64,000 nucleotides of DNA, taken from the NCBI GenBank assembly GCA_950097015.1, contig CATNEN010000011.1:186001-250000 (forward strand). Reading direction: 5' to 3'. Origin of the DNA: Macrostomum hystrix. Its lineage: Eukaryota > Animalia > Platyhelminthes. The notes under the pieces are model-generated. The model was not told the origin of the DNA, did not search any database, and saw only the letters and a program-made list of their open reading frames with translations. This document shows positions 1-61,760 of this stretch, one piece after another (position 1 is the stretch's first letter; every line of letters starts with the position of its first letter). The position numbers and the translations under genes were made by a program.

Positions 1-310
1 CTACTGCATCAATTAAACGCAATGAAAATTTACAAAACCTCTGATGCAATCGATCGAGTTGATTGGATGTGTACAATTTCAGACTGATTCATGAAAGCGT
101 CTGCGGGTTATTCAAGGTTAAAGTGTGTTTCGTATCTCCGTAGTGTATTTTTTGGAGCCAGCTTGACATTCGCAGGCAGACACTTCTACTGCATCAATCG
201 CAATGAAAGTTTACAAAACCTCTGATGCAATCGAATTGATTGGATGTGTACAATTTCAGACTGATTCATGATAGCGTCTGCGGGTTATCAAGGTTAAAGT
301 GTGTTTCGTA
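1..310 (+). repeat. ~185-bp tandem repeat (about 1.7 units), window-truncated
   Basis: CTACTGCATC...CAAAACCTCTGATGCAATCG...AGACTGATTCATGA unit starts at 1 and again at 186; an inverted copy lies at 943-1130 and a partial copy at ~17343-17405. Confidence 0.8.
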
Positions 311-1130: not shown

Positions 1131-1284
1131 GTCTTTTTGAAAGTACAAGAAAATACCCTGCGGAGATAGGAACAATCTTCAAAGCAGTGTAATTCTATTA
1201 TGTATTGACAAAAATAAATTATATTTATTTTGGAACGTTATTTTAGTTGCATCAGAAGATCTGTTAAGTTTCGCTGTAATTGAT

Positions 1285-2260
1285 CACCCGACGGCAGAGG
1301 TCTAGACGGGGAAAAAGCTTAAAATATCTCCCGTCTAGCCTGGAAAAAGCTCGTCTGTTAAGCTTTCTTCTATGGACTAGACCGGAAAAAGCTCATCTGT
1401 TTTAACTAACTAGTACTTCAATGCAGCAAGGCTAGAAATTAAGCGATTTATTGTGTTTTGTTTAACCTGTTAAAAATCCTAAATTTTGAAATACGACTTT
1501 GTTTTAAAGTGCTGTTTGAATAAAAACGAATTTAAAATTCATCAGCACGGGGCTGGCACTGGTATATGATTCATTATCAGGTTTGATGTTACTTGCAGAA
1601 TTTACAAGCTAGTCAGTTGCTTTAAAGCTATACATAGATGTGACTTACATTGTATGGTGAAGTTGAAGATTGCTTTTTGTCGAATATGAATTTTCTTGTA
1701 ATGTAACAGTAAAGCCACTATATTACTACTTGCTAGATTAGAAAGTTGTAGTAACAGGTTACAGGAATTAACTATTAACTCAGGTTCTTTAGCTTTATGG
1801 GCTTTTTCTGATGTGAAACTTTTGTTAAGTAGAAATCAAGCTAGGCTATGCCTAGGCACGATATATTTTCTAAACATTTGATCTATTTATCCAATAATGT
1901 GCTGATAAAAACTGCATAGTTAGAACCTTTTGTTATTATTAATGCTAGTTTATATATATAAATGCTAGCTGTCCAGTCCTCTTAGTTACCCAGCCCTCTA
2001 AGCATTTGATCTATTTATCCAATAATGGGCTGATAAATACTGCTTAGTTATAGCTTTTTTGTTATTATATATGCTAGTTAGTAGTTTAATATAGGCACTC
2101 ATTTGCATGGAGAAAATTTATTGAATTGTTCTAAAATACCAAATAGCTTTTTATGTTATGATCTAGTCATATTTGTTAATTTAGAGACATTATCTATTTT
2201 AGTATTAAAATACATTTTGCAATATAAAGTATAACATATATATACCATATATATCCTGTC
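1285..2260 (+). repeat. Left terminal inverted repeat (unique part)
   Basis: Reverse complement of ~16060-16927. Outer ~590 bp shows only a few mismatches; inner part is more diverged and has an internal duplication (~1874-1960 vs ~2003-2080) absent from the right TIR. Confidence 0.9.
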
Positions 2261-2261
2261 C

Positions 2262-3130
2262 TCCTAGCTACCCAGCCCTCTAGTCCTAGATATCCTGCCC
2301 CTAGCTGTCCAGTCCTAGCTAACAATCTTGCCCCCCTAGCTGGCCAGTCCTAGCTAGCTATCCTGCCCCCTAGATGTCCAGTCCTAGCTAGCTATCCTGC
2401 CCCCCCCTAGCTAGCTATCCTGCCCCCCCTAGCTAGCTATCCTGCCCCCTAGCTGTCCAGTCCTAGCTTGCTTTCCTGCCCACTTAGCTTGCCAGTCCTA
2501 GCTAGCAGTCTTGCCCCCCCTAGCTGGCCAGTCCTAGCTAGCTATCCTGCCCCCTAGCTGTCCAGTCCTAGCTAGCAGTCTTGCCCCCCCCCTAGCTGTC
2601 CAGTCCTAGCTAGCAATCTTGTCCCCCCTAGCTGGCCAGTCCTAGCTAGCTATCCTGCCCCCTAGCTGTCCAGTCCTAGCTAGCAGTCTTGCCCCCCCTA
2701 GCTGTCCAGTCCTAGCTAGCAATCTTGTCCCCCCTAGCTGGCCAGTCCTAGCTAGCTATCCTGCCACCCCTAGCTAGCTATCCTGCCCCCTAGCTGTCCA
2801 GTCCTAGCTAGCCATTTTGCCCCCCCCCCTAGCTGGCCAGTCCTAGCTAGCTATCCTGCCCCCCTAGCTAGCTATCCTGCCCCCTAGCTGTCCAGTCCTA
2901 GCTAGCCATCTTGCCCCCCCCCTAGCTGGCCAGTCCTAGCTCGCTGTCCTGCCCCCCCTAGCTAGCTATCCTGCCCCCCTAGCTGTCCAGTCCTAGCTAG
3001 CCATCTTGCCCCCCCCTAGCTGGCCAGTCCTAGCTAGCTATCCTGCCCCCCTAGCTAGCTATCCTGCCCCCCCCTAGCTAGCTATCCTGCCCCCCTAGCT
3101 ATCCTTTCCCCATAGCTGTCTAGTCCTACG
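2262..3130 (+). repeat. Left subterminal CTAG-rich satellite array
   Basis: Modules CTAGCTGTCCAGTC and CTAGCTAGCTATCCTGCCCC(C)n in irregular tandem order. Confidence 0.92.
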
Positions 3131-3338
3131 CCACCTTCCTTTCCTCCCAGCTACGCTGCCTCCTTGCTCTCTAGTCCTTTCAGCTATCCTGCCAAGTACC
3201 CTGTACTTCATTCGATTCCTTATCCTTTTGCTTTCTTATCTTATTTATCAGTCCTAGCTCTGCAGTACCTTTTAATTCTGCAACCTGTTTTGTTATTAGT
3301 ATCTGTAACCTGCTGGTTTTTCGTTTTAACTTTTGCAG

Positions 3339-6221
3339 ATGGTTCACACTGCGTATTCATCCTTTTTGCAGGAAAATAAACGATTCGGTAAGATAGTATT
3401 CTTCATTGTATGTGCTTTCTTAATCCTTTTTAATTGTGTAAGTAATATAAGAATAAGTTCATGCATTTTTTTCATTTTTTTCTTGAAACGGATGTGTATA
3501 TGTACATGTTTAATGATGTGATTTTAGTTATTTAGCATATCCATGAAGCTGACAAGTCGTTTATACTGTAGCTAATTGCTCAATTTTTTTAATTGGTTGT
3601 TATAAAGCAAAATCCCGAATGTACAGTAAAGGTAATAAAGGTGCATGATATATTTATACTGTTACTTTTCTATTTTCAGATCAACAGAAGGAGTTGGCAG
3701 CCAGATTCAAGTCTCTCTGTGGCTCGGAAAGACAGCGGCTCGCTGCAAAGGCAGCACAGACTGCCCCCAAGCTCTCAACGATAGAGAAAATGGTAAACTG
3801 CATTTTTTTGCTTGGCGGACTCACTTTTTATCGCTACCACACCTTTTTAATTTGCTATCACACCTATCGAAAAGTTTAGCTTCGCAAGGACCCATCGTGG
3901 AGATTTTTTTTAATTGTGGCCCGTCAGGATAAGCCACCATACTTTTCATGCAGCCCAGAAGATGTAGAACTTCATCCATTGGCGCGGCAAGTGTCAGAGG
4001 TATGAGCCACGTCTCATTGGTTAATGACCTACGCTTACTCTTGATTAATTAATAATGCTCTGTTTAAAACTATTTTTAGAAGCTTATCGGCCATTTGAAA
4101 AATCCGCCTAAAAAAGCATAATGGGTTTGAGAAAGGCCCTTCGCAAGCAGGCTCAGGATGCATATAGTAAGTTATTTTTCTCTAGCTGGTTTTTGGGCAT
4201 ATACAGATCCTAGAGAAGATCAAATTTATTTTAGCGTTCAATGTGGCTATGAATAATCTTATTGGTAATTAAGATGTGTCAGCAGTAAGATTGTAATAGG
4301 AAACTACTTTTATTAGGGATTATATTATAGTTAAATAGACAAAACGTGACAAAAGTTGCCACATTTTTTGGATTGTTAACATTTTAGATGCAGCAGGGTT
4401 TCATGGCCGCGTCCAATGGAAGAAGTTGCCTATAATTGGCCAATTCGAACCATGGTTATGCGATCCTACATGGATGACAATGGAGTCTATTAAAGCGGCA
4501 CTTTCGAGCCCTATCGTATTCCATCCATCAAGATCAGGTCTTAGTTTTAGTTCTTACTTCTTACTTAGCTAAACTTACTTACTTACTAACTAAACTAAAC
4601 TAAACTAAACTAAACTAAACTAAACTAACTAATAAACTAAACTTACTTCTTAGTTTAGCGCACAATATGAAGTTATTTCGTTATTTACACTGCTTTACTT
4701 TACCGATTTATACGATAAAGGTGATTTTAATTAGTGCAGAGAAGTTTGAGTGCTTTGAAATATCGTCTAGCTGTTTCCGTTTATTCACTGACTGATTTAT
4801 CCTTATTTTAAAATCATGACTCAATTTAAACTAGCCGTTTTGTTTAATTTCTTTATTTCTCTCCAGTTCCAATCGACGTAAGCGAACCCGAAGGCAACGA
4901 AGACCATATCGACCAATCAGAAGACCTTGACTGGCCGAGCTCCGGCGGTCCGCACTTCGGTGTGCCGAGCTCCAGTGGGCCTAGAGGCGGTGGGCCTAGT
5001 GGCGGCGGGCCGAACTCCAGCGGGCCTAGAAGCGGTGGGCCGAACTCCAGCGGGCCTAGAAGCGGTGGGCCTAGTGGCGGCGGGCCGAACTCCAGCGGGC
5101 CTAGAGGCGGTGGGCCTAGTGGCGGCGGGCCGAACTCCAGCGGGCCTAGAAGCGGTGGGCCGAACTCCAGCGGGCCTAGAAGCGGCGGGCCGAACTCCAG
5201 CGGGCCTAGAAGCGGCGGGCCGAACTCCAGCGGGCCTAGAGGCGGTGGGCCTAGTGGCGTCGGGCCGAACTCCAGCGGGCCTAGAGGCGGCGGGCCGAAC
5301 TCCAGCGGGCCTAGAGGCGGCGGGCCGAACTCCAGCGGGCCTAGAAGCGGTGGGCCTAGTGGCGGCGGGCCGAACTCCAGCGGGCCTAGAAGCGGTGGGC
5401 CTAGTGGCGGCGGGCCGAACTCCAGCGGGCCTAGAGGCGGTGGGCCTAGTGGCGGCGGGCCGAACTCCAGCGGGCCTAGAAGCGGTGGGCCGAACTCCAG
5501 CGGGCCTAGAAGCGGCGGGCCGAACTCCAGCGGGCCTAGAAGCGGCGGGCCGAACTCCAGCGGGCCTAGAGGCGGTGGGCCTAGTGGCGTCGGGCCGAAC
5601 TCCAGCGGGCCTAGAGGCGGCGGGCCGAACTCCAGCGGGCCTAGAGGCGGCGGGCCGAACTCCAGCGGGCCTAGAAGCGGTGGGCCTAGTGGCGGCGGGC
5701 CGAACTCCAGCGGGCCTAGAGGCGGTGGGCCTAGTGGCGTCGGGCCGAACTCCAGCGGGCCTAGAGGCGGCGGGCCGAACTCCAGCGGGCCTAGAGGCGG
5801 CGGGCCGAACTCCAGCGGGCCTAGAAGCGGTGGGCCTAGTGGCGGCGGGCCGAACTCCAGCGGGCCTAGAAGCGGTGGGCCTAGTGGCGGCGGGCCGAAC
5901 TCCAGCGGGCCTAGAGGCGGTGGGCCTAGTGGCGGCGGGCCGAACTCCAGCGGGCCTAAAAGCGGTGGGCCGAACTCCAGCGGGCCTAGAAGCGGCGGGC
6001 CGAACTCCAGCGGGCCTAGAAGCGGCGGGCCGAACTCCAGCGGGCCTGAAAGCGGTGGGCCGAACTCCGGTGGACCAGGAAGCGGCGGGCCTAGAGGCGG
6101 CGGGCCGAACTCCAGCGGGCCTAGAAGCGGCGGGCCTGAAAGCGGTGGGCCGACAAGGGATGGGGATTTAGCTAATAATGTTTTGTATGAAGATGGAGAA
6201 CTTTTTGTTCTTGCTGATTAA
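3339..6221 (+). CDS. Six-exon transposon gene: HMG-box-like N-terminus plus ~400-aa Gly/Ser/Pro repeat tail
   Basis: GT-AG exons 3339-3387, 3680-3792, 3928-3999, 4080-~4166, 4388-4537, 4867-6221 with matching phases. N-terminus [41 protein letters not shown] resembles HMG helices. One extra A is needed in the A6 run at 4110-4115 to keep exon 4 open. Confidence 0.62.
4575..4650 (+). repeat. (TAAAC)n / (TTAC)n microsatellite in intron
   Basis: ACTAAACTAAACTAAAC run seen directly. Confidence 0.8.
4965..6150 (+). repeat. Coding minisatellite of 30-bp ([11 protein letters not shown]) and 15-bp (GGPSG) units
   Basis: CGAACTCCAGCGGGCCTAGA repeated; the GGCGTC variant recurs at ~5258, ~5588 and ~5738, implying higher-order duplications; frame preserved throughout. 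Confidence 0.95.
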
Positions 6222-8509
6222 TTATGCTTCTTAACATGGCGCGCAGCACAAAGTTATTTCGCAATATATATTTTACTGCAAAGTAGTTTGAGTGCTTTGA
6301 AACATGGTCTTGCTGTTTTGTATTAGATAATTTGTGATTTGATGATTTGTACGAGCTATGTAGAACTTTTTGTTTTTACTGATTAATTTTGCTCGTTTCG
6401 GGTGGGTGCGGTGGGTGGTAATTGAGGGTGGGTGCCGGGTCCCCTCAGTCCATGGACTGAACAGCCGTTCGCAGCCTTCAGGTGCGCCGCGCAGTAGCTG
6501 CCAGCTGTGCTGTCGGATGCACATGTGGCAAGATTGGGACAGGCGTAATCGATTATTATTAAAAATATTATTATCATCGTAGTGCGAGTGCACACAAAGT
6601 CTTGCACTTTTGAATCCACCACCAAAAATTAAAACGGCAATATTGTTTTCGTGACCTAGACAAGGCACGCAATTTATGTTATCAATGTTTGAACAGAATG
6701 TGCAGCTGAAGAGAATTAAAAAAATGCTTCCTGTTTTCCACTTCTTTCAAGTACAAACTAAAAAACTGTCGAGGCAGATTGAGAGGCGGCGGATAGCAGT
6801 ACATGTGCCACGGATGGTCGTATGCGACCGGCCAAATTGTCGACCAACTGCACGGATCGTAAACGAGTATACTGGGCAGCGGCAGCTTTAATAATCCAAC
6901 TCTCCCTCACCCCAACCAAAGGCTTAGCACCTTGCGCGTTGTGCGAATTGCGCAAGTTACAATACTGCGGAGAGGGAAATGGATCACTAGTTGGGATGAG
7001 TGAGTTATTCAGGGTGGACACGCGCAGGTTTCAATTGCGCAAGTTGTGATAGGAGGGAGAAATTGCTCACTTGCTCATGTGAACACTTTTCAATGTCCAA
7101 TAGTGTAACACTGACAATATCAAAGCGTAGCTTTTAACAGATATTAAGGGATAACTCTGATATCATAGCCTAGCACTGGTAGTAGGTTAGTTTTAGGGTA
7201 GATTGTACAGATTCGATTTTAGGATATTGGGATTTAGGGAAGTGCTTAGAAGATAAAAACATTTACGTGGGGAACTTTTAGTGACAATCGTATACTAAAA
7301 TAGTTGCTTACAAAAATAGTAGGGGCATTAAAACAGTAAACGCTTATTCTTCCTTTTAATAATATACTTTATCGATACTCACGGCTGCATCTTATTCGTC
7401 CGTCCGTTATTTATAAGATCGGAGGTTTTGTCTGCACATCTGTTCTCGAGATGTCGGTTTTCGAGCAGTCAGATTTTTTTACATTTTCCATGAAATTAGG
7501 TAAAGAGAAGGTAAATTCCTAAGGTGAGTTCTGTACCGCTGGCTTAGCCGACCAACACCTAGAATCATGCTGATGATGCGTTCCTTGATACACAAACAAC
7601 CATGAGCTGTAAACTTTGGCACGAGGACCATTAGTAAAAGGGATGTTACACTACTCATAAGCATAAAAGGATATGAAAAAATGAAATGCCGCCTTCGGCA
7701 AAACCGGGCGACCAGACTTGGGGTAAACCCCGAACCCGGAACCCGACCCGGACCCAAAAACCGACCCGACCCCGAACTTTACCCGACTATCTCCTGGACT
7801 TGGAGTGATGGCTAAGAAGAGTACTTGTCTTAAAATACCGCCTTTTCCTTTTTCTACTTTTCTATTGTTAACTCTTCTCCCCCACTATCACTACACTACT
7901 CGACTCCTCGGACAGTCGTACTCTTCACTTTACCCTCTACTCCTGAAAGCCTCAGGCAGGTTTGTATGTTAAAAATTCAGATTTAAGTTGCTGACGTGGG
8001 ATTACATAGCTAACGAAGTAAAAAGAAAACATAATTAAAGACCATTTAAAGACATAATGCAGAATTAGGATGAGCTGTTTAGACTTTAGAAATATGTATA
8101 TCTATATGTATGTATTATAATTCAAGGCCTAAAATTCGTAGAATGATTTATATACATTAGAATGACTAAGGCATCACGATTATTAATTCATTAGTGCAGT
8201 GCAAATTACGCCAGTTCAGTTTAAGAAAAAAATATTTTTGAAATGGCGCGATTTCGAAAGACGCTTTATCACGTAATAAGGCAATACTTAAATAAAACTG
8301 ATAATAATAAAAACACCGGAAACCTGAACCCGGTACCAAAACCCGACCCGAAAACCCGAACCCGAACACCCAACCCCGAACCTCGAACCCGACCCGGACA
8401 TCTACACCCGAACCCGGTACCAAAACCAAGAGCAAGAAAACTGAGAAACTTCAATTCTAGACTTCATTTGCTTTCAAAGACTATAGTCTGAAGCTACATG
8501 TATACTGCA

Positions 8510-8890
8510 TACGAGGGGGTTAAAAAGTTTTGCCGTTGACTACTTTGAGAAGCCACTTCTACTCTTCGAGAAGAAGCTAAAAGTTTGGGGAATCAAAGGT
8601 TCGGATCCATGCACCCATGAAAGCTCGTCGAGAGGCATTTCTAGAAGGCAATGCGCATGACACTTGTTCTGCGACCGCACTGGACCCCTTACGATCGAGC
8701 TTATGCAGGAGCCTGACACAAGCATCAATTCTGATCGCTACATGTACATGTACTGAAGGATGCATGACATTCAAAACAAGCGTCACAGAGACACCAAGCC
8801 CTTCATTCTCCATCACGATAATGCAATAACACACACTGCTCAGAAGACCACTGAGGCTGTCACAAGGCTCAAACCTTCTGCCACACCCGC
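8510..8890 (+). pseudogene. Degraded Tc1/mariner fragment nested in the KDZ element
   Basis: TA-CGAGGGGGTTAAAAAGTT mariner-like end at 8510; FILHHDNAITHTAQKTTEAV matches the mariner HHDNAxxH catalytic motif; no second TIR found. Confidence 0.6.
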
Positions 8891-10549
8891 CATACTCGGC
8901 CAATTAGCTTTGCTCGACTGGCTCACTACAGTCTGCAGCAGCAAGCACCAGGACGCAGGTGTCGAGCGGCGCTTCGTGCCGCCCTTCCTGCGTTCCTCCC
9001 GTACATGTACTTTTGTGTCTCAACCCCTTGCCCAGTGTATTTGCAATTACCCCCACCAGCCCAATCCGGTTCTCCGGTTTGTCTGGCCCTCGGCTTAGCC
9101 AGGCAGGCCGCTGATTGGCTGCAAACACTTATTTTCTCGACGCTCTAATTCTCTTCTTCGCCTCTCGGCTCTACTGCAGCCTGCCCCAACCCCAACACCC
9201 AACTCGGGGTGGCTAAGCCCCACTCCTCCCCTTCTCACCTCCATGGATGCGAGGCTGGTGCGAGCCAATTTTGCGTCTGCCACCCCCTGGCAATGTCATT
9301 GGCTGGAGGGCGCAGCCCGGCCCCGCCCCTGCTCTGATTCTCTCGCCCCTCCCCGCCACTATTTATTTGTGCGCTCCGCTCGCCATGCCATAACGCGCTC
9401 TCGACCGCCCTACCCTGCTTAATTGCTCCGGAAAACTTGGTTTGACGCGCGGTCTCTTACTCCGACGAATCAAATCGATTACCTAAGATCAGATTTTGAC
9501 ACTTAGAAGAACCACACAGTGCATTGCGGTGAGCGCAGGCACAGAGCAGAGGATTGCCAATAATACTGAGCAGTCAGCGCGTGCACGACCTGCACTACTA
9601 GCCCGAGACGCGATTTATGAGCTCCCGGTAAGATTCGACTTTCCGCGTTTATTATTTCACCTGGTTGTTCTCATTGCTCGAGCGTCTTCGGTTATTTACG
9701 TTACGTTCGATGGAGTCCGAGTGGCCGTCTGCTCACTCGACACTTTTATTATCCGTTATTTCGATCATTATTGTCTGCAAAGTGTCCGTACGCCTCCAGG
9801 CTTTTGCTTACCCTAACACTCTGTAGTGCACAAGACCGACTGCAGGTGAGATGGCCAGGCAGATGCTGAGGTTCTGACCGCGCTGACCATTCACAGTCGC
9901 ATTGGTTCTGTCCGATTGAGATGTCCAACCCAGCAGAAATGGCAGAAATTGCTTGCAAACTTGCCTAACTAGCATGCAAAAAGGTACGGTATAGTCGAAC
10001 TCCACAGCTTAATTACAGTGAATGAGACTAGGCAAATATGCATTTACGTGTCAATTCCGATATTCATGGTAGATCGGCTACTGCTAGTAGTTAAGCAGAA
10101 TTATGAAAAAAACGAAGGCGCATTAACACTGCCTTTTAGGGTTTGACATTTGGTTTGTTGTTACTTTTTAGCAAAGTAACTGCGACCATATCCAATCAAT
10201 TTTCAAAATGGACGCGAATTCTCGCTTCTCTCGCCACTGTGGCATAAGAATTGTGCTCAAAGTAACAATTATTATTAACTAAATCGCAGCACTGAAAACA
10301 AAAGTAATAAAATAGCGCGCTAGTGAGTAGATTCACAAAGTTGTTTTGATGTAAATCCACAGTCAGCAAGAAATACAAGAAATACAATTTTCCGTATTAA
10401 GGAAGATTGTACTGCAACAATATAAATGGGAACTGTAGGAAGTAATTGTGCACACCAATAACACATCGAAAAAATTTCTTCTGTTGCAGTTAAATGAGTT
10501 AGAAAATAACAGAAAGAAAAAAACTTTTATCTTGCACGACACCGTAAAA

Positions 10550-13500
10550 TCAATGCATTTGTGCGATCACATCAACGCATTGAAACCGCAGGTCTTCAAG
10601 GACATGGCGACAATGGGAAAGCAAGCCTGTTTTGCCTTGTAACGACTCGATTTCTTGATAGAGCCGTAACTGCAGACGCGAAGCTTCTTCGCGGATCAGA
10701 TTTTTCTCCTCACCTATTCGGGAAAATAGAGACGAAGCTTCGATCATGAGAAGACGATACCGTGCAGCAGGTTCAGATAGAGACACGCCGCAGTAGACAT
10801 CGGCCGTTGGATTGTAATATGTGGCCAGAGGTTCCCGTGAAAATTGTGGCAGATCCTTGGACCAAATGGCCGCCATTTCGCGCTGAACAACAGACAATCG
10901 CGCGATGTACACCTTGGCGTCGCTTTGTGCACTGCATTGGCGAAGGCTTGCATACAAGCGCAGCCGCTCAACAGCTCCGCACCGAAGGCGCTCTAATGGA
11001 GTCAGCGGAGAGGATTCTTCTTCAACTAAATACTCCTGAAGGTGCAGCTGTCCTCGTAGAAATAGCTGGTGCGGCTCACGATCTGAAAAATATGATTTCA
11101 TTGCACGACTGTTTTATTGCTTTACTCACGCGAGACAACCGCAATTAAGGCAGTGTGTTACCTTCTGGAAGCAATTTCTGCAAGAGACTGGTCAGAGACG
11201 CCGAGTGCCTGCGCAGCAAACGAAGTCTGTTTTGCAGCCATTTCCCTGGAGTGGAGGAAGTTGAAAAAAATTCTTTCAATAAATCGGCGCCCATAAATGA
11301 TAACCGCCATCGAATAACTGAATAAATGACATCCATTTTTACTACATTTGCTGTCAAAAGTTGAGGATATATACATTTTCAACCTTTAAACTGAGAAAAT
11401 ATGCGACAGAGAACAGAGAGATAGCATTAAAGTAAAAGGACAAAAAATCAAACACTGACCACATTCCAGTAAGTGACTGACATTCGAACGCCAAATGTAA
11501 TGAGCTAGAGTGTAAGTGCGGTGGTCAATGCGCATCTCCTTTAACTGTGGGCCGTATGGTCGGAACGATGAATTCAACCTCTCACAGTGTTCGCCATCGG
11601 TTAGGCCGCAGCCTTCAACGAATCTAACTGAGTTTTTTAGCTGAAATATGAAATAATAGGAATGATATGTGGCAAAAAATATAATGTACAATCAAAACTA
11701 TTTTCTTTCTTGTTTTGGTACGAACAAATGTAATACGAAATTTATAAATGAGACACAAAATACATACTCGGCAGGATGTCTTGTGAGCGAATGCATGAAA
11801 GGCGTTTACAGCAGGAACAATGGTTACATATGGATAGTCAGCCGCGATCTGCTGCAATCGACGGAACATCTTGCAGGCAATGTCATAGACAAAGATGACT
11901 ACCCCATTTACGCCACTTGCTTCCAAGAAGTATCGAAGACATTGTTCAGCGTATACAAGGCGTTCTCCTGGCGATCGGATGTCAGCGCATGAAACTATAA
12001 TTGAGTGGCGACAGGAGAGCATGAAGAGTCCGTTAACATCAAGGGCTCTTGAAGAAATTCTCCGAGTGACTGAGCCAGCTTGAAAATTCGAACACGAAGC
12101 AGTATCTTCGCCAGCTTCCTTGGGATCGACATCAACATGAATAAAAGGTGCCGGAAGACGACCATCGAGTGGTGATGGACACAGCTGCTGACCAGCCCGG
12201 CGTCTGTGACGCAAACCCATGCACCCATCTCCTGTGACGATTGTTGTGGACGGCAACGAACCTGGAGTGTTCTGAATAATTTGACGGATCCGCGATTTAA
12301 ATTTTACAACAATTATTGATTCGTGTATACATGCGAATGCTTGCATTTTAGTAAATTTCAACAGTGATCTAATTAAGAGCAGCAATTTAGAAATTAGACA
12401 CCGTAGCTGGGGTAGCAAATTTTAGACACAATGTGCACTTCGTCTATCGTCTTTCCTAAGGAAAACCTGCTCAATTTCGAAAAACAGTAGCAAGTTATTA
12501 CTCACAGCATCTGGACACAACAAGCAACCGGTCGGCCAAGGAAGCACATCGCGAAGAAGTTGCCTATATCTTTTAAGCACATCGTTTCGACGAAGAGCAT
12601 CGTATAAATGCAGCCATGTCTGGAAACGAAAATGTTTTTCCAATTGTTATCGGCTTTGAGTTTGTTGGTAAAACGCTCTATACTTAACCATATTTATATT
12701 TTAAGATACTATCCCATTTTTAGTATATAGGACTAGAAGATACAAGTTTTTTATAACTTACGCGCTGTCGACCCTCAGTGATATTATCAAACGTAAGCAA
12801 GCAGCGCACAGCTCGTAGAAGTGACATCTTTCCGTCGGATGTGAGACAATCGAGCATATCCAGAAGTCTCTTGTGAATGAATTTGTCGGAACTAACTTTT
12901 GTAACAGGAAAGTAGCCCGCAATAAGCATAGCATCGTTAATAGAACATTCCGCACAAAGATGAACTGACACAAAGATGCGATCTAAAATGATATTGCCCC
13001 AGAATGTAAATACGTAAAACAATGTTAATACGGGTAGCACCATCGCAATACACAGCAAATGTTAAAAATTACGTACGACCAAGATGGTCGTATACATTAG
13101 CAGACGTGCTACTATGTAAATCCTCTCGGGAATTAACACAGCAATGAATGACAGGCCGCTCAGCAGGAGTAGAGTCTTGGTACATCTCTCCCTATAATGA
13201 GTTTGAAGAGTAAACGAAAGTCACATCCACGACATAAGAAGATGCACTTTCATATGAAGTTATGAACAGTCAACTTACATTCCACTCGGTAAATTTGTGC
13301 ACCAGAAAGGTGCCATGCGTATCTTTCATACAATCCGAGCAGAATTTGCTGGCGCATGTAGTACAATATACGAAACCATCATTCATGCAGCGGCAGCACG
13401 GCTGTAGAATAAATTGCTTTAGACAGGCAGACGACTGCTGCTCAATAACTGGTTCTTCTCGCTCCCAGTCCTGTAGAGGCTGCTGCAACTTTGGTGATGC

Positions 13501-13704
13501 TGCCACGGAATCTACGACGTCCCAGTCCCTTTCTGCATGATCTGATACATGATCTGCTACAGAATGCTGAGAAGCTGCGGATTCCTGACTGCTTTGAGTA
13601 GTTTGCCGGTTAAAGTTGGCTCTAGCGACATTATAGGGCAGAAAGAGTGAACCACGGCCGCGGCGCCGCGATACTCGGATGCCAAGATTTACTGAACGAG
13701 GAAA
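10550..13704 (-). CDS. KDZ (Kyakuja-Dileera-Zisupton) transposase with N-terminal CxC cysteine cluster; 5' exon not located
   Basis: Exons 13704-13279, 13191-13077, 12982-~12762, 12619-12506, 12271-11768, 11640-11460, 11245-11162, 11082-10550 join in phase at GT-AG sites. Motifs CRC..YCTTCASKFCSDC..H..HKFTEWNG, GYFPVT, CLLCP, GDGC, LSCRH, GERLVY, VYDIAC, FHAFAHKTSC, GCGLTDGEHCER. Confidence 0.88.
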
Positions 13705-13764
13705 CTGAAATAAAATAAAGCATAAGAAAACTACAGTAAGGAAAAAGGAACAAAGTAGTGCTAC

Positions 13765-14080
13765 AGCAGGGCAGGGGCTGGTGGTGGGGCAGGGGCAGGA
13801 CTACTGCAGGGTTTGGGCAGGGGATGGGACTGGGCAGGGGCAGGGGGTTTGGGGCAGGGGCAGGGACAGGGGGTTGGGGCAGGGGCAGGGGGTTGGGGCA
13901 GGGGCAGGGACAGGGGGTTGGGGCAGGGGCAGGGACAGGGGGTCGGGGCTGGAGCAGGGGCAGCGGCTGAGGCTGGGTCTAGGGCAGGGGTAGGGCATCG
14001 GTAGAGGCAAGGGGTGGGGTAGGGGCCAGACAAGGGCAGTGCGAAAGTTGGACAGGGGCAGGGGCAGGGGCAGAGCAGGG
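13765..14080 (+). repeat. GGGGCA-type G-rich repeat with G-quadruplex potential
   Basis: Dense GGGGCAGGGGCAGGGACAGGGGG runs. Confidence 0.85.
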
Positions 14081-14127
14081 TCCGTGTCATATAAAGGGAA
14101 CATAATAAATGACTTCGTTAAATCCAG

Positions 14128-14134
14128 CTTTATA
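14128..14134 (-). promoter_or_regulatory. Candidate TATA box for the KDZ transposase gene
   Basis: TATAAAG on the minus strand between the right satellite and the transposase exons. Confidence 0.3.
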
Positions 14135-14424
14135 GGCCACAGCTTGTAGTATATAAATATAACCTTCTAGCTAGTGGTTGGTATAGCTACCCTGGTAAGG
14201 TTGGCAGGTTGCTCATAACTGGAGATTTATCTTAATTTAAGTAATTAAATGAAATATGAATTGTATCTCATTTGTCATATAATAGTTTAGGAAATCAAAT
14301 AGATATAGCCTTATTTAATCACTTCGAAATAGTGCCTCGGTTAGCAATATAAAATCATAAACCAAGTTTAATAAATTATTCTTTATAATAAATTATAAAG
14401 AAAAAAAGTATTCTTGTATAAATA

Positions 14425-16040
14425 CTGGACTGGACTGGATAGCTAGCTAGGACTAGAAAGCTAGGGAGGCAAGATAGGACTAGACAGCTAGTGGGGGGGC
14501 AGGATAGCTAGCTAGGACTGGACAGCTAGGGGGGCAGAAAAGCTAGCTAGGAATGGACAGCTAGGGGGCAGGATAGCTATCTAGGGGGGGCAGGATAGCT
14601 ATCTAGGGGGGGCAGGATAGCTAGCTAGGGGGGCAGGATAGCTAGCTAGGGGGGCAGGATAGCTAGCTAAGGGGGGCAGGATAGCTAGCTAGGACTGGCC
14701 ACCTAGGGGGGTGGCAAGATTTCTAGCTAGGACTGGACAGCTATGGGGCAGGATAGCTAGCTAGGACTGGACAGCTAGGGGGGCAGGATAGCTAGCTAGG
14801 ACTAGGCAGTTAGGGGGGCACTGGGCACAATAGCTAGCTAGGACTGGACAGCTAGGGGGCAGGATAGCGAGCTAGGACTGGACAGCTAGGGGCCAGGATA
14901 GCTAGCTAGGACTGGACAGCTAGGGGCCAGGATAGCTAGCTAGGACTGGCCAGCTAGGGGCCAGGATTGCTAGCTAGGACTGGGCAGTTAGGGGGGCACT
15001 GGGCACAATAGCTAGCTAGGACTGGACAGCTAGGGGGCAGGATAGCTAGCTAGGACTGGACAGCTAGGGGCCAGGATAGCTAGCTAGGACTGGCCAGCTA
15101 GGGGCCAGGATTGCTAGCTAGGACTGGCCAGCTAGGGGGCAGGATAGCTAGCTAGGACTAGACAGCTAGGGGGGCAAGATTGCTAGCTAGGACTGGACAG
15201 CTAGGGGGCAGGATAGCTAGCTAGGGGGGCAGGATAGCTAGCTAGGGGGGCAGGATAGCTAGCTAGGGGGGCAGGATAGCTAGCTAGGGGGGCAGGATAG
15301 CTAGCTAGGGGGGCAGGATAGCTAGCTAGGGGGGCAGGATAGCTAGCTAGGGGGGGCAGGATAGCTAGCTAGGGGGGCAGGATAGCTAGCTAGGGGGGCA
15401 TGATAGCTAGCTAGGACTGGCCAGCTAGGGGGGGCAAGATTTCTAGCTAGGACTGGACAGCTAGTGGGCAGGATAGCTAGCTAGGGGTGGCAGGATAGCT
15501 AGCTAGGACTAGGCAGTTGGGGGGCACTGGGCACAATAGCTAGCTAGGACTGGACAGCTAGGGGGCAGGATAGCTAGCTAGGACTGGACAGCTAGGGGGG
15601 CAGGATTGCTAGCTAGGGGGGGCAAGATTGCTAGCTAGGACTGGACAGCTAGTGGGCAGGATAGCTAGCTAGGGGGGGCCTGGATAGCTAGCTAGGACTG
15701 GCCAGCTAGGGGGGGGGCAAGATTTCTAGCAAGGACTGGACAGCTAGTGGGCAGGATAGCTAGCTAGGGGTGGCAGGATAGCTAGCTAGGACTAGGCAGT
15801 TAGGGGGGCACTGGGCACAATAGCTAGCTAGGACTGGACAGCTAGGGGGCAGGATAGCTAGCTAGGACTGGACAGCTAGGGGCCAGGATAGCTAACTAGG
15901 ACTGGCCAGCTAGGGGGGCAAGATTGCTAGCTAGGACTGGACAGCTAGGGGGCAGGATAGCTAGTTAGGACTAGACAGCTAGGGGGGCAAGATTGCTAGC
16001 TAGGACTAGACAGCTAGGGGCAGGATATCTAGGAGGACTA
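14425..16040 (-). repeat. Right subterminal CTAG-rich satellite array (inverted relative to the left)
   Basis: GGGGGCAGGATAGCTAGCTAG and GACTGGACAGCTAG modules are the reverse complements of the left array; about twice as long. Confidence 0.92.
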
Positions 16041-16059
16041 GAGGGCTGGGTAGCGAGGA

Positions 16060-16927
16060 GGACTGGATAAATATAGTATATATATATGTTATACTTTATA
16101 TTGTAAAATGTATTTAATACTAATATAGATAATGTCTCTAAATTAACAAATATGACTAGATCATAACATAAAAAGCTATTTGGTAGTTTAGAACAATTCA
16201 ATAAATTTTCTTCATGCAAATGAGTGCCATATAATTTTTTATATAACCACTAACTAGCATTTATAATAACAAAAAAGCTATAACTAAACAGTATTTATAT
16301 AATTTATCAGCACATTATTGGATAAATAGATCAAATGTTTAGAAAATATATCATGCCTAGGCATAGGCTAGCTTGATTTCTACTTAACAAAAGTTTCACA
16401 TCAGAAAAAGCCCATAAAGCTAAAGAACCTGAGTTAATAGTTAATTCCTGTAACCTGTTACTACAACTTTCTAATCTAGCAAGTAGTAATATAGTGGCTT
16501 TACTGTTACATTACAAGAAAATTCATATTCGACAAAAAGCAATCTTCAACTTCACCATACAATGTAAGTCACATCTATGTATAGCTTTAAAGCAGCTGAC
16601 TAGCTTGTAAATTCTGCAAGTAACATCAAACCTGATAATGAATCATATACCAGTGCCAGCCCCGTGCTGATGAATTTTAAATTCGTTTTTATTCAAACAG
16701 CACTTTAAAACAAAGTCGTATTTCAAAATTTAGGATTTTTAACAGGTTAAACAAAACACAATAAATCGCTTAATTTCTAGCCTTGCTGCATTGAAGTACT
16801 AGTTAGTTAAAACAGATGAGCTTTTTCCGGTCTAGTCCATAGAAGAAAGCTTAACAGACGAGCTTTTTCCAGGCTAGACGGGAGATATTTTAAGCTTTTT
16901 CCCCGTCTAGACCTCTGCCGTCGGGTG
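16060..16927 (-). repeat. Right terminal inverted repeat (unique part)
   Basis: Reverse complement of 1285-2260. Confidence 0.9.
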
Positions 16928-17175
16928 AATTGATGGTTATTACGTGACACGTATGAAACATTCGCCGACACTTATTCAGACACTTCTACAGACACTTTAG
17001 TTTCTGTCGTACGGTCAGGAACAAGCATTAAATTTGTCCAGGACACTTCCGAATTCATATTTAATGTAATAAAGCAGTCCATGCATAATCCATGCATGCA
17101 TAGAACGACGTATTAATTTGCCGATTAGCATTCGCATACACATTCATATTCAAACAAGATCATTGTAACTTAGAA

Positions 17176-17405
17176 AATAATAACCATCAATTACTGCGAA
17201 ACTTAACAGATCTTCTGATGCAACTAAGATAACGTTCCAACAAAAATAATTATTTTTGTCCATGCTTAAAAGAAATTACATAGCTTTAAAGTTTGCTTCT
17301 ATCTCGGTAGTGTATTTTCTTGTACTTTAAAAAAATACACTTCTGCTGTATCAATGGCAATGAAAATTGACAAAACCTCTGATGCGATAGAGTTGATTAG
17401 ATGTG
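17176..17405 (-). repeat. Inverted paralogue of the KDZ target region (empty site)
   Basis: Reverse complement reads CATCAGAAGATCTGTTAAGTTTCGCAGTAATTGATGGTTATTA, i.e. left flank plus right flank with one AATTGAT. Confidence 0.85.
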
Positions 17406-19589: not shown

Positions 19590-22500
19590 ATGCCCACGCC
19601 AGTCAGTGTCTCTAGTTTTACCGACGCTGCCGCAGCAGCAGCCAGCCAAGACCCAGACCTGCAGCGCCTGCTGGCCAAGGTTGAGCGAATTGGCGCGACC
19701 ACCAGACGACTAGACACGGTTGGAGCTGTTGTCATTGGCAACAATGCTGCTGCAAATGGCACGGCGGGATTGGAGCCTGTACTGGCGGATGCTCGCAGCC
19801 TATCGGACATGATTCGCTGCACATCAGAACTCGCTGACCGCGTTAGTAATAAAGTCAGACAGCTTGACTGCGCCAAGAGTCGCGTCACGGCAGGACTGCA
19901 ACGTGTTGAGGACATCATTGATCTGAAAGCCTGCACTGACGGTGTGCAAAAGGCTCTACAAGATGAGGACTTCGAGATCGCTGCCGCACACATTCACAGG
20001 TTTGCTGAGTGCACCTCACTATATGTGGCTCACTGCTATGTGGCTCATTGCTAGATAGGATTCCTAAACCCGAATTCCAAAATCAATGCTTTCCTGTATT
20101 ATCTATTTAACTTCGGGTGTGTCATAAGTAATGTTGTCGGATTCCCACCCAACACTTGACATTTCATTTAAATCTGCTGTTGTAATTAATAAGCTCTAAA
20201 TTTCATCTCAGTTACAAACTATTTTATCTATGGTAATTTAGACAGGCCCAACGTAGCCCAAGTGACTTATTGAAAATACACAACAATAATTTGCTTCTTC
20301 GTTATCTATCTTCAACTGACCTAACTTTGAAATAATTGTCACAAACGACAAAAATGGTAGCAGAGCGTTAAATTCACCGTTAAATTGCAACATGGTGAAA
20401 ACTAGAGGTATTCTTTCAACATCCAAGCGCTTGACAGCAACGAGCAGCAAGTCAACGCGCAACACGGGTCTCGACCACAACTCACGAAGCAACCCTGACT
20501 CAGATCCCAATGTTCGCCACGCACATCGCCCAGAAACAACTTCGGCATCTGTTGTCTTTACACCATTTGTGCAGAACCCAGCAACGCAAACGCCAAGTTT
20601 GACCACTCATCATACTGCAAGCACAATTGACATCAACACCCTCATCAGTTCAATGACTGCCATGATGCAGCAGAATCAGCAGCTCATACAGCAGCTCGCC
20701 GCCAACAACACGCCCGCCTCGGCGACGGCATCTCGGCCAGCGTCGCTTCTCACCGACACTGTGCTTATAAAAGTGCATCTGCAGTCCTTTGATGGTGAGG
20801 ATATCGCGAGTTTCCCTGCCTTCTGGAATTCGTTCAACCACAGAATCAACCAAGTCGGCTACTCGGAGGTCGACAAATTTGAAGCTCTGCGTGGTTTGCT
20901 CACGGGCAACGCTCTCAGGAAGCTCGCCGGACTGGACGCCTGTCAACCTGGCGCCTTTCAAGAGGCATGCAGGATCCTACAGATCAATTACGGGGACGTA
21001 CAAGAGCAAAAGAGCGCTTGCTATAAACGTCTTCTCAGCATGCAGCGCCTCCCAGAGCCTGAATTTCACTCCTTGGAGGAATTCACGGATGCACTACGGC
21101 TCACAATCGGTCAGCTCAATCGTCTGAACGAGCCCACGGCCGCGATCGATGCATACACATATGCAGTATGGCCAAATCTTCCAAGTGTTCTCCAATCGGA
21201 AATTCAAGAGGCTCGTATTAAAGCTTCGAAGAATCCAATGCCCACAATGTCAGAGCTCCAAGAGCACCTGGACATTAAGCTGCGCACTATCCGCGCTGTA
21301 GCCATGAACAAGAACCCGGTCGACATCCCATACGCCGGGGCCAGCCTAGTCAACTCTGCCTATTCGAGCCAACCCGTTGGAAACAAAACAAGTTTTTCAG
21401 CCGAAGAACGCACTCGCCGTCGCAGAATAGGTGTCAACAAACTAAGTTCTTACCCCTCGGGACACAAAGAAATTACATGTGCCTATTGTGACGGGAGCGA
21501 CCATAGCGCCCTTCACTGCCACCGCATTACAGAACCTACGGATCGCCTCAACACCATCCGTCGAAAAAGATTGTGCTTTAACTGCCTACGCGATCACAAT
21601 GCAAGGGATTGTCAATCATCAAGACGATGTCAAAAATGCAAAGGTAAACACCACTCATCTATTCATGGCGCGAACAGTACTCAGGACGACACCAGAGAAA
21701 AGAACAAACCTATTCACCAATACACCGGCCGACATACCACTGCAAGTTCCCATTTAAACGTGACAACTACACCGGCGGCCGCAGATAGCATAGCTCAAAC
21801 GAAGGATGTTAGCAAGTCGGACGCCTTAAATACTGTTTCATGCGTCTCCTCCACCCAGGAAGGTCACCTCAACCCAACCGTTATGGCCACCTTCTCTGCT
21901 CCAGCCTTTAATCGCAAGTCGGGTGCTTCAACTCGTATTTCTGCTCTCATTGATGGTGGATGCAGCTACACCTATCTAAGAAGCGACATCGCGAAGCAGC
22001 TCGGCTTACACCCACTTCGCAAGCTCACACTGGAAAGCTCGGCTTGCCACGCCACAGCTCGTCGTGTTATCAGTGCCGAGTTAGTTCAACTTGAGCTAGC
22101 CACATCGGATGGCAGACGCATGCCCCTCAATGTTCTCTCTATTGATAAGATTGCACCAGCAATTCACTTAAAAGCTGTTCAGCTCCCATTAGACATCCGA
22201 GCCACACTCGCTCACCTGCCGCATGGTGTTGCAAACAGCCCACCTAAGGAAGACACTGAATTGGACCTCGATCTTCTGATCGGTAAAGATTATGCTCAAC
22301 TCCTGATAGGACCAAGTGTCGGTGCTATTCCGCTACGCCCCACCTTCACCGCTCATCTGACGCCATTCGGAGCTATTCTCACAGGCTCGCTCTCAGCCAC
22401 AACAAACTCCAATTGCTTACTCAACGCAGGACGAGTAACATGTACCTCGCTCTTCAGCCATGCACAGGCGGACAACATGGAGACCATAGTGGAAAGGATG

Positions 22501-60500: not shown

Positions 60501-61760
60501 TTATCACCAATGTCGATATCGGCTGAGTCCTTGCGAAGATTACATGGCTGGACCAACATAAGTAGAACAATCTTTCGCGATGTTGCTAATACAGTGCTAG
60601 GTTGACGAATCACTGAAGGCTTCGAATTCTCCCATGTTAAAACGGTAAAACATATTTCAGTGTTTCTCTGCTCGACTTCATCGAGGTCGCTAATTGAGAC
60701 GGGGAGATTAATGCCTGTTAAATCAATTTCTGCCTCCCAGTTTTTGTAAGTTGCTAATCTATGACCAGATTTTTTCACTGCAGGATCATCGCAATGAAGA
60801 TAGGCCAAGCAGGCAAAACGGAAACAGTCATTTCCATTGCTGGGAGGGTTGATGAGAGCCTTCTTGTTGAGTAGCTCAATAGGCAAATTAAATTCGCTGC
60901 ATCTACCGGAATAGTAACGAATCCGATCAGATAGAGTACTGCACAGATCCAAGTGATTCAGACCATTAACAGCCCAGCCACTACCATTGGAATTGTAAGT
61001 ATCAATTTTGCGCTCAAGTTCAGTGAATTGCTGCATCCACCAGTTTTCAAACTCACATATGTCATTGAGACATACCAAGTGGTGCGCGACATACTTGATT
61101 TCGGCATGAACAGGCAAAACATCTGTTGCAGCTAGTCTGATCATGTGAACATTGAGCTTGAGTTGTGCGCGAATAGACTGACCATCAGAAGAGTCTAGTC
61201 GTATTTCAAGCGCTTGTCGAACGGCTTCTTTGGTCGCACGAAGAAATTCGAACGGATCACATTGAACTGTCGGAAAAAAACGCAGTACTTCAAGGACATG
61301 ATCGTGTGCAGCTGATATGATGGAAGATTGGAATGGGATTCCTGTAAATTAAAAGGATAAGGAAGGAAGTTATGTAGCCCCGTAATAGTTGAGCATCTAA
61401 CTAATTAAAAGCACTCCAATTTTCAGTTACAGTAGTCCTATACAAATTAATTTCCCGAATAGGCAGGTGAATACTAATTTGAAAAAGCTTTTTTATATCA
61501 GTAAATTTTAGTCAGAGAATATTCATAAATTTATAAATTCTTTATATATAATACACAAATGCAACATTTGTTTTTCTAATTACCGTAGCGACTTTTCAAA
61601 ATACGTTTTTTAAGAAACTAATTGCGGAAACTTGTATAACATAGTATGCGATCAAATAAAAACTACAATGCTTATTCTCACCATATCTATCAGAAGAATA
61701 AGATGACTCGCTTGAATTGCTTGACTCGAGAGAATTTAAGCCTCCGTTTGAGACGGCCAT
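57515..61760 (-). CDS. polB: Protein-primed family B DNA polymerase (~1300 aa); predicted exons 61760-61682 and 61341-57515
   Basis: YADFE, HNLRNYD, KGVFPYDY, RGIRGG, DANNLYG, KLKNNSVFGK, GDTDS, RPKLYS, KKKAKG; EndoVII-like Zn motif CHYC..DHDHLTG..RGAACSSCN; frame stays open upstream of 61144 to an acceptor at 61342. Confidence 0.93.

Follow-up and report, generated by a model that had tools for sequence, protein, structure and literature searches.

The DNA analysed here, a window of 64,000 nucleotides from the flatworm Macrostomum hystrix, contains a 15,643-bp element (1285-16927) which we regard, with a probability of about 0.9, as one of six near-identical copies of a class II, cut-and-paste transposon of the DDE-type KDZ superfamily that has recently been active in this genome. 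It belongs to the known KDZ class and is not a new kind of element. Its features are listed in Table 1.

The termini CACCCG and CGGGTG and the duplicated AATTGAT, first proposed in a sequence-only reading of this DNA, were borne out base for base, the end sequence starting with CACCCGACGG. That reading had also proposed a foldback architecture and pointed to Galileo, in which kilobase-long inverted ends hold tandem repeats. Ends of this kind are indeed present, as arms of ~625 nt followed inward, on both sides, by arrays of 22/34-nt units; the arms (1284-1909 and 16303-16928) differ by 3 mismatches in 625 according to BLAST, i.e., 99.5% identity, a value which the repeat tool rounds to 100%. 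The GGAAAAAGCT motifs found three times near each end are putative transposase-binding sites, since short derivatives of the element, described below, retain just the terminal sequence that contains them. An empty, paralogous target site had been claimed in the same window, and it is real: on the minus strand, 17178-17405 aligns at 83.5% identity over 231 nt with the left flank (1070-1284), reaches 8 nt into the right flank, and carries a single, uninterrupted AATTGAT followed by GGTTATT. It is a paralogue and not an allele.

Table 1. Positions of the features of the KDZ element and of its target site in the window
Feature	Position	Strand	Remarks
Whole KDZ element	1285-16927		Termini CACCCG (1285-1290) and CGGGTG (16922-16927)
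Left target-site duplication, AATTGAT	1278-1284		Same 7-mer at right flank; 8th base mismatched
Right target-site duplication, AATTGAT	16928-16934		Perfect match to left 7-mer
Left terminal inverted repeat, unique part, ~625 nt	1285-1909	+	622/625 positions complementary
Right terminal inverted repeat, unique part	16303-16927	-	Pairs with left arm
Left subterminal GGAAAAAGCT motifs (three)	1310-1319, 1342-1351, 1384-1393	+	Putative transposase-binding sites
Right GGAAAAAGCT motifs	16893-16902, 16861-16870, 16819-16828		Mirror of left set
Left subterminal tandem array, 22/34-36-nt units	2262-3104		Inverted relative to array at 14475-16064
Right subterminal tandem array, 22/34-nt units	14475-16064		Mirror orientation to left array
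Gene 2	3339-6221	+	Predicted exon model from sequence; convergent with transposase gene
Gene 2, proposed exons	3339-3387, 3680-3792, 3954-3999, 4080-4166, 4388-4537, 4867-6221	+
15-nt tandem array, about 75 units	4964-6151		Encodes gene 2 repeat tail; length varies between copies
Transposase gene, 8 exons, 760 codons	10550-13704	-	Predicted model (GT-AG borders, phases); stop 10552-10550
Transposase exons 1-4	13704-13279, 13191-13077, 12982-12762, 12619-12506	-
Transposase exons 5-8	12271-11768, 11640-11460, 11350-11162, 11082-10550	-
KDZ catalytic core, exons 5 and 6	11460-12271	-	PF18758
Exon 1, basic RRRGRG stretch and B-box-like zinc finger	13279-13704	-	Finger at residues ~101-138
(GGGCAG)n-type array upstream of transposase gene	13832-14073		Inside presumed outron/promoter region
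Uninterrupted paralogous target	17178-17405	-	Other arm of host inverted repeat; single AATTGAT at 17186-17192

The KDZ identity of the transposase, put forward in the same reading, was supported by a domain search. Domains were searched exon by exon, and the Pfam profile PF18758 matched exon 5 (E = 1.5e-18, 67.8 bits) and exon 6 (E = 1.3e-9, 38.5 bits), both above its gathering cut-off of 26.6 bits and jointly covering profile positions 3-216 of 217. As had been proposed, the exons keep the reading frame across their junctions; the model has eight of them, all bordered by GT-AG. The catalytic candidates, D15 (GDGCM) and D126 (YDIAC) in exon 5 and E17/E20 (DGEHCER) in exon 6, occupy alignment columns that are conserved by 55-64 of the 64 closest relatives; the same degree of conservation applies to C57, C83, H85, C129, H155, H159 and C163 in exon 5 and to D15 in exon 6. 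The predicted protein of ~760 residues would comprise a basic stretch, a B-box-like finger, a Cys cluster, the RNase-H-like KDZ core and a C-terminal region of ~250 residues. The finger in exon 1 matched B-box profiles below the Pfam cut-off (E = 7e-4 and 4e-3), and exons 2, 3, 4, 7 and 8, scanned singly, gave no Pfam match; exons 2-4, which gave no CxC match in that scan, align with the region of the homologues that matches CxC2/CxC1, and it is on these homologues that a CxC-type assignment of the N-terminal Cys cluster would rest. The eight-exon model is confirmed by comparison: in tblastn, the 777-residue PAA67003.1 of M. lignano aligns colinearly with exons 1, 3, 4, 5, 6 and 8, while two divergent sister families of the same genome match exons 2-6 in one case, and exons 3-6 with part of exon 7 in the other, spanning the full predicted exon in all but one of the exons reached, with diverged introns. 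The alignment of exon 1 with the M. lignano homologues begins at about their residue 1, whereas a search for this exon in the sister locus L050 found no match.

Homologues, annotated but uncharacterised, come from M. lignano, from sea urchins (Lytechinus among them) and a sea star, from amphioxus (Branchiostoma), Priapulus and a fish (Astyanax), those of M. lignano, echinoderms, amphioxus and fish being the closest. The relatives have a common B-box + CxC2/CxC1 + KDZ build. In a tree whose tips bear organism labels only, not those of Kyakuja, Dileera or Zisupton, the Macrostomum sequences group together in a single clade (SH-aLRT 97) which adjoins other animal sequences; the nearest fungal sequences in the search were CxC1-type basidiomycete proteins.

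The length of the target-site duplication, which it had been proposed to tabulate over genomic copies, bears directly on the identity of the element. It is exactly 7 bp in all six full-length copies (AATTGAT, TTTTTTT, GTGGGGC, AATTTGC, AATAATT and ATTAGGC, all perfect and all different), reaching 8 bp in none of them, and it is a perfect 7 bp in four of six short derivatives, the remaining two matching at 5/7 and 6/7; this far exceeds chance. No target consensus is evident among the insertion sites. A canonical Zisupton element with a mis-called 8-bp duplication might be suspected, given that Zisupton, discovered in platyfish, was the earliest KDZ branch reported from an animal and that automated classifiers call every KDZ element Zisupton (PMC9297572). 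We consider this improbable: the eighth base never matches in the six full-length copies and the four short derivatives with perfect duplications, moving the ends by one base disrupts the inverted repeat in the other copies, SWIM, CxC4 and CxC7 domains occur in none of the 64 nearest relatives, which carry CxC1/2/3 instead, and the protein has ~760 residues as against more than 1300 in the platyfish Zisupton.

Galileo, a P-superfamily element of Drosophila, also combines a 7-bp duplication with kilobase-long inverted ends containing tandem repeats. The resemblance in end architecture and duplication length could suggest a Galileo/P-like foldback element that captured a KDZ gene, a highly improbable reading, as the KDZ gene is the only transposase-like gene found, none of the open reading frames scanned showed a P/THAP-type domain, and sister KDZ families of the same genome have the same gene structure. 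A KDZ transposase alone accounts for the 7-bp duplication, because fungal Kyakuja KDZ elements make 7-bp duplications too. The transposase of Galileo belongs to a family unrelated to KDZ, and its architectural likeness to the M. hystrix element is convergent.

The six full-length copies, of 14.9-22.3 kb, are distributed over four contigs (C11 and C1 with two each, C5 and C38) in both orientations. Two of them lie just 68 kb apart on C11 and haplotig purging of the assembly can leave residues, but segmental duplication or assembly redundancy in place of transposition is a negligible prospect, as similarity between copies ends exactly at CAC...GTG in every one, with unrelated flanks and its own 7-bp duplication in each, as the copies occupy four contigs in both orientations, and as short derivatives share these ends and duplications. 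Across the unique 7.6-kb core, divergence among copies is 0-0.16%, two copies being identical. Each of the six keeps all eight transposase exons open, with no more than 0-2 amino-acid changes in any exon, and the presence of six intact copies so nearly alike suggests that the element is currently active. In the 22-kb copy, a LINE is nested in the 15-nt tandem array of gene 2. At least six short derivatives (346-442 bp), which contain no genes, keep each end for 105-138 bp at 87-97% identity.

From a mechanistic point of view, and by inference from DDE transposases, the transposase would bind the terminal ~105-140 bp through the three GGAAAAAGCT motifs of each end, excise the element at CAC...GTG and insert it where the target is cut with a 7-bp stagger, the repair of the gaps yielding the 7-bp duplication. 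The same ends would mobilise the gene-less short derivatives.

In exon 1 of the transposase gene, no in-frame ATG precedes codon ~107. The exon begins at a TTTCAG acceptor of the spliced-leader type, the sequence from 13704 being TTTCCTCG, and the host spliced leader ends 3' with TTGCATG, its ATG being in frame with the exon. The 1 kb preceding exon 1 was searched for a 5' exon that could be joined in cis, carrying an ATG and a phase-0 donor; none was found, nor any strong donor-like hexamer at all. Most likely, spliced-leader trans-splicing at the TTTCAG acceptor would donate the AUG. Two proposals can be taken together here, namely that the transposase mRNA is trans-spliced at 13704 and translated from the leader AUG, and that the Macrostomum/deuterostome B-box-KDZ clade is an animal lineage with Kyakuja-like 7-bp duplications but long inverted ends; this combination is tentative, and we place it a little short of even odds. 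If it is true, expression of a DNA transposon would depend on a host RNA-processing step found in only some animal lineages, and this dependence on the leader could at once license the element in flatworms and restrain its horizontal spread. The element is potentially autonomous in that its transposase gene is open, and this autonomy hinges on the putative leader-supplied start, as the zinc finger of exon 1 is not preceded by any in-frame ATG. Of the earlier proposal of an undescribed, potentially autonomous animal KDZ family with foldback architecture, potential autonomy and foldback-like ends are retained, but a duplication of 7 bp had already been reported for KDZ elements (PMC12730594).

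The second gene is predicted on the opposite strand, convergent with the transposase gene. Its first proposed exon reads ATGGTT from 3339, a candidate site for joining of the spliced leader as well. Its phase requires a 17-nt micro-exon at 3880-3896, and its last exon encodes a Gly/Pro/Ser tail of ~400 residues built on GGPNSSGPR repeats; none of its exons, scanned one by one, gave a Pfam match. Exon e has a full-length match of 51% identity in a sister family (C39:4623775-4623927), where gene 2 is likewise convergent with its transposase. The window copy is frameshifted in exon d by an A6 run at 4104-4109 in place of A7, and two other copies are also frameshifted in gene 2, three in all. If gene 2 is required, this one-base frameshift would make the window copy non-autonomous.

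The element provides a well-preserved animal reference for the poorly characterised KDZ elements outside Zisupton, with exact ends, duplication length, exon model and a two-gene layout, and its natural short derivatives define the minimal cis sequences of a KDZ element. If it is currently active, it would offer a potential genetic tool and would generate insertional variation in this laboratory flatworm genus.

Among the closest known systems are M. lignano PAA67003.1 and the clusters named "B box-type domain-containing protein", which share its build, length and clade, with 48% identity in the core; the M. lignano relatives are colinear over the whole gene and annotated merely as hypothetical proteins, and a search confined to published papers turned up none that describes a KDZ element from Macrostomum. 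Zisupton of the platyfish makes 8-bp duplications and encodes a protein of more than 1300 residues with SWIM, CxC4 and CxC7 domains (Bohne et al., 2012). The M. hystrix element shares with it, and with the Zisupton-type KDZx1 of Cryptococcus, a KDZ transposase, cut-and-paste movement and inverted ends, and with the platyfish element also a multi-exon gene and an animal host; it differs by its 7-bp duplication, its shorter protein and exons in which SWIM, CxC4 and CxC7 were not found. The Dileera-type KDZ1-3 of Cryptococcus neoformans and Zisupton-1_PGr of Puccinia, whose mobility was shown experimentally, are elements of 9-11 kb with inverted ends of 139-241 bp, a CxC1 + KDZ transposase and extra open reading frames of unknown function; they have termini starting with GAC, no B-box and 8-bp duplications (4-8 bp in some events), against 7 bp in M. 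hystrix. Giant KDZ elements are known in fungi, green algae and brown algae. Fungal Kyakuja elements (Kyakuja-1_LB and Kyakuja-2_LB) have 7-bp duplications and 5'-CA..TG-3' termini, one listed consensus beginning with CAC (Kojima, 2025; PMC12730594). Compared by reported features and not by clade placement, Kyakuja resembles the M. hystrix element in its KDZ transposase, 7-bp duplication, CA..TG termini (here CAC...GTG), large size and extra genes. By contrast, the fungal families are reported without terminal inverted repeats and carry a TET/JBP gene, whereas the M. hystrix element lacks TET/JBP and combines ~625-nt inverted ends and tandem arrays with a B-box-like finger in an animal host.

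The 15,643-bp element is a KDZ transposon, as the sequence-only reading had proposed from its termini and putative transposase exons. In domain and homology searches run exon by exon, the Pfam KDZ family (PF18758) was matched by the open reading frames of exon 5 (E=1.5e-18, profile 3-168) and exon 6 (E=1.3e-9, profile 164-216) of the transposase gene, whose eight exons have GT-AG borders and join in phase over 760 codons. The B-box-like finger at the end of exon 1 (E=7e-4) was below the Pfam cut-off. Homologous sequences support this exon model: tblastn with the M. lignano protein PAA67003.1 (777 aa) matched exons 1, 3, 4, 5, 6 and 8 in order, with ends at the predicted splice sites, and two divergent sister families of the same genome (about 72% and 58% protein identity) matched exons 2-6 in one case and exons 3-6 plus part of exon 7 in the other, over whole exons except the partial exon 7, their introns being unalignable. 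The candidate catalytic residues, D (GDGCM), D (YDIAC) and E (DGEHCER), together with the Cys/His set, are conserved in an alignment with the 64 nearest relatives, and in each of the six full-length copies every one of the eight exons is open, differing by 0-2 amino acids. A basic stretch of exon 1, SRRRGRGS (residues ~12-20), lines up with the AT-hook-like core RGRPR of M. lignano homologues, and may be a second DNA-binding motif before the B-box.

Coordinates of the features (window positions unless a contig, C1 to C42, of the M. hystrix assembly is given; C11 is CATNEN010000011.1)
Feature	Position	Strand	Remark
KDZ element	1285-16927
Target duplication	1278-1284; 16928-16934		AATTGAT
Terminal inverted repeat arms	1284-1909; 16303-16928		~625 nt
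Left tandem array	2262-3104		22/34-36-nt units, inward of terminal inverted repeat
Right tandem array	14475-16064		22/34-36-nt units, mirror orientation
Transposase exon 1	13704-13279	minus
Transposase exon 2	13191-13077	minus
Transposase exon 3	12982-12762	minus
Transposase exon 4	12619-12506	minus
Transposase exon 5	12271-11768	minus
Transposase exon 6	11640-11460	minus
Transposase exon 7	11350-11162	minus
Transposase exon 8	11082-10550	minus
Second gene, ATG	3339	plus	after TTGCAG
Second gene, exon e	4388-4537	plus
Second gene, last exon	4867-6221	plus	15-nt array
Unique core	6200-13800		7.6 kb
Full-length copy	C11:187285-202927		window element, duplication AATTGAT
Full-length copy	C11:271262-286947
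Full-length copy	C5:5097050-5111900
Full-length copy	C1:25892483-25908111
Full-length copy	C1:10728461-10750711		22 kb (locus L034)
Full-length copy	C38:24587063-24602369
Nested non-LTR retrotransposon	L034:5160-9929 = C1:10733420-10738189
Host inverted repeat, first arm	1070-1284 and 16935-16942
Host inverted repeat, second arm	17178-17405	minus
Further host repeat copies	3-310		89-93%
BEL/Pao-type LTR retrotransposon ORFs	20392-26029
Tc1/mariner-type transposase ORF	26502-27545	minus
1209-aa ORF	57515-61144	minus

The 7-bp target duplication was borne out across the genome. A search of the whole assembly (220,453,370 bp, 42 contigs) with the first 300 bp of the element returned 12 full-length ends, which pair into six elements. 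Each is flanked by its own perfect 7-mer (AATTGAT, TTTTTTT, GTGGGGC, AATTTGC, AATAATT and ATTAGGC); an 8-bp duplication is rejected, the match stopping at 7 in all six, and a one-base shift of the ends destroys the inverted repeat in the other copies. Short derivatives (346-442 bp), in which each end is reduced to its outermost 105-138 bp (87-97% identity), bear perfect 7-bp duplications in four cases (TACCCCC, TGTTTTC, TTGAAAT, ACGTAAA) and decayed ones in two (5/7 and 6/7 matching). No target consensus was evident among the duplications of full-length copies and short derivatives. The unique core diverges by 0 to 0.16% among copies, two of which are identical there, and length variation is located in the tandem arrays. 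The 22-kb copy carries a LINE (APE-RT-RNase H, 1205-aa ORF) nested in its 15-nt array. A 358-aa ORF lies upstream of the 1205-aa ORF.

The foldback architecture proposed earlier also stands. The left end opens with CACCCGACGG and the right end is its reverse complement; the terminal repeats differ by 3 mismatches in 625 (99.5% by BLAST, rounded to 100% by the repeat tool). With the mirrored arrays, the inverted architecture therefore spans about 1.8 kb at the left end and 2.45 kb at the right, for which "foldback-like" is a fair label. The exact motif GGAAAAAGCT occurs three times in the first 110 bp and is mirrored at the opposite end.

The "empty site" reported in the same window is real, with a single AATTGAT followed by GGTTATT, and was rightly called paralogous. 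Over 231 nt it is 83.5% identical to the left flank extended by the 8 nt that open the right flank. A host inverted repeat was hit by the insertion, and the site, 250 bp away from the element, is the second arm of that repeat; it is therefore a paralogous site and not an allele, but still displays the pre-insertion target. Without the element, the two host arms of ~225 bp would lie ~235 bp apart; this repeat, present in additional copies in the window, could represent a small family of foldback elements or MITEs. Elsewhere in the window, a 1270-aa ORF of the BEL/Pao-type element contains Peptidase_A17 and DUF1759, and the ORF after it DUF5641; the Tc1/mariner-type ORF has HTH_48, HTH_32 and DDE_3; and the 1209-aa ORF combines a protein-primed type-B DNA polymerase with an Endonuclease VII domain, which is consistent with Polinton/Maverick.

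Translation of the transposase may begin at a start codon supplied by the spliced leader. From its acceptor onwards, exon 1 stays open through 142 codons, and its first in-frame ATG comes only at codon ~107, within the finger. Its alignment with the M. lignano homologues begins at about their residue 1; PAA67003.1 (annotated "partial"), the closest homologue, starts F-Q-S where exon 1 starts F-P-R-S. Neither an ATG-initiated exon with a phase-0 donor nor a strong donor-like hexamer was found in the 1 kb upstream. Trans-splicing requires an unpaired acceptor near the 5' end, and the M. lignano spliced-leader acceptor motif is [T/C]TNCAG (PMC8629364), with which the exon 1 acceptor TTTCAG agrees. 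The M. hystrix genome holds about 90 spliced-leader genes of two variants, both ending TTGCATG/GTAAG. Variant 1, identical to the 3' half of the M. lignano leader, lies in ~11.6-kb tandem units on C15, C17 and C42 (19 exact hits); variant 2 (...CTCTCTTTTTTGCATG) forms a ~70-copy array of 927-bp units at C39:12667898-12753120. Exon 1 begins at a codon boundary and the leader AUG would therefore be in frame, a match expected by chance alone one time in three. We infer from sequence that the start codon would be donated by the leader through trans-splicing at TTTCAG.

A second gene, convergent with the transposase gene, was read from the sequence as short exons leading to a last exon translated as GGPNSSGPR repeats. 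Its exon e has a full-length match (51% identical) at C39:4623775-4623927, ~10 kb from a sister family's transposase and in the same convergent layout, which shows conservation of the gene between families. None of its exons matched a Pfam family. At 4104-4109, the window copy and two others have six As, as against seven in three copies, which shifts the frame of exon d; the difference reflects either a frameshift common to these copies or an assembly error in a homopolymer.

An exhaustive search of representative sequences with exon 5 (E<=1e-3) gave only 224 matches, the best 48% identical. The top ones are M. lignano hypothetical proteins (in UniProt "B box-type domain-containing" or "CxC2 domain-containing"), followed by a chytrid, Lytechinus, Astyanax, Branchiostoma, Patiria and Priapulus; the top relatives share a B-box + CxC2/CxC1 + KDZ build. 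Among the 64 nearest full-length matches, Pfam recognised KDZ in 63, CxC1 in 33, CxC2 in 27, CxC3 in 11 and Ulp1 protease in 4, and SWIM, CxC4 or CxC7 in none. In a quick maximum-likelihood core tree (rows with under two-thirds exon 5 coverage or under 450 aa excluded), all the Macrostomum sequences form a single clade (SH-aLRT 97), to which at least four M. hystrix families contribute eight variants and which is sister (81) to the remaining animal sequences; basidiomycetes (Tilletia, Mycena, Marasmius) form a CxC1/Ulp1 clade outside. Exon-5-like matches number at least 59 in the M. hystrix genome (at C39:4613614, C1:10851623 and over 45 further places), in several families at 73%, 59% and 35-40% identity to the window element, some with ten or more identical copies. 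Judging from this diversity and these identical copies, KDZ elements are a diverse and apparently active part of this genome.

The sequence-only reading was thus right on class, duplication length, architecture and the open transposase gene, but excessive on novelty. No description of Macrostomum KDZ elements was found in the literature searched; a 7-bp duplication is nevertheless not new for KDZ, since fungal Kyakuja already has one. In Chlamydomonas and Ectocarpus, KDZ elements of giant size have been described that contain nested insertions and additional genes. Zisupton and the Dileera type (Cryptococcus, Puccinia) duplicate 8 bp, and Dileera consensuses start with GAC (Kojima 2025, PMC12730594). 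By contrast, the window element duplicates 7 bp and starts with CAC; it is not a canonical Zisupton. Fungal Kyakuja combines a 7-bp duplication with CA..TG termini, one consensus in the published table starting with CAC, and has no inverted ends (Kojima 2025, PMC12730594). In a comparison of traits, the duplication and termini of the window element are Kyakuja-like, although its ends are long and inverted.
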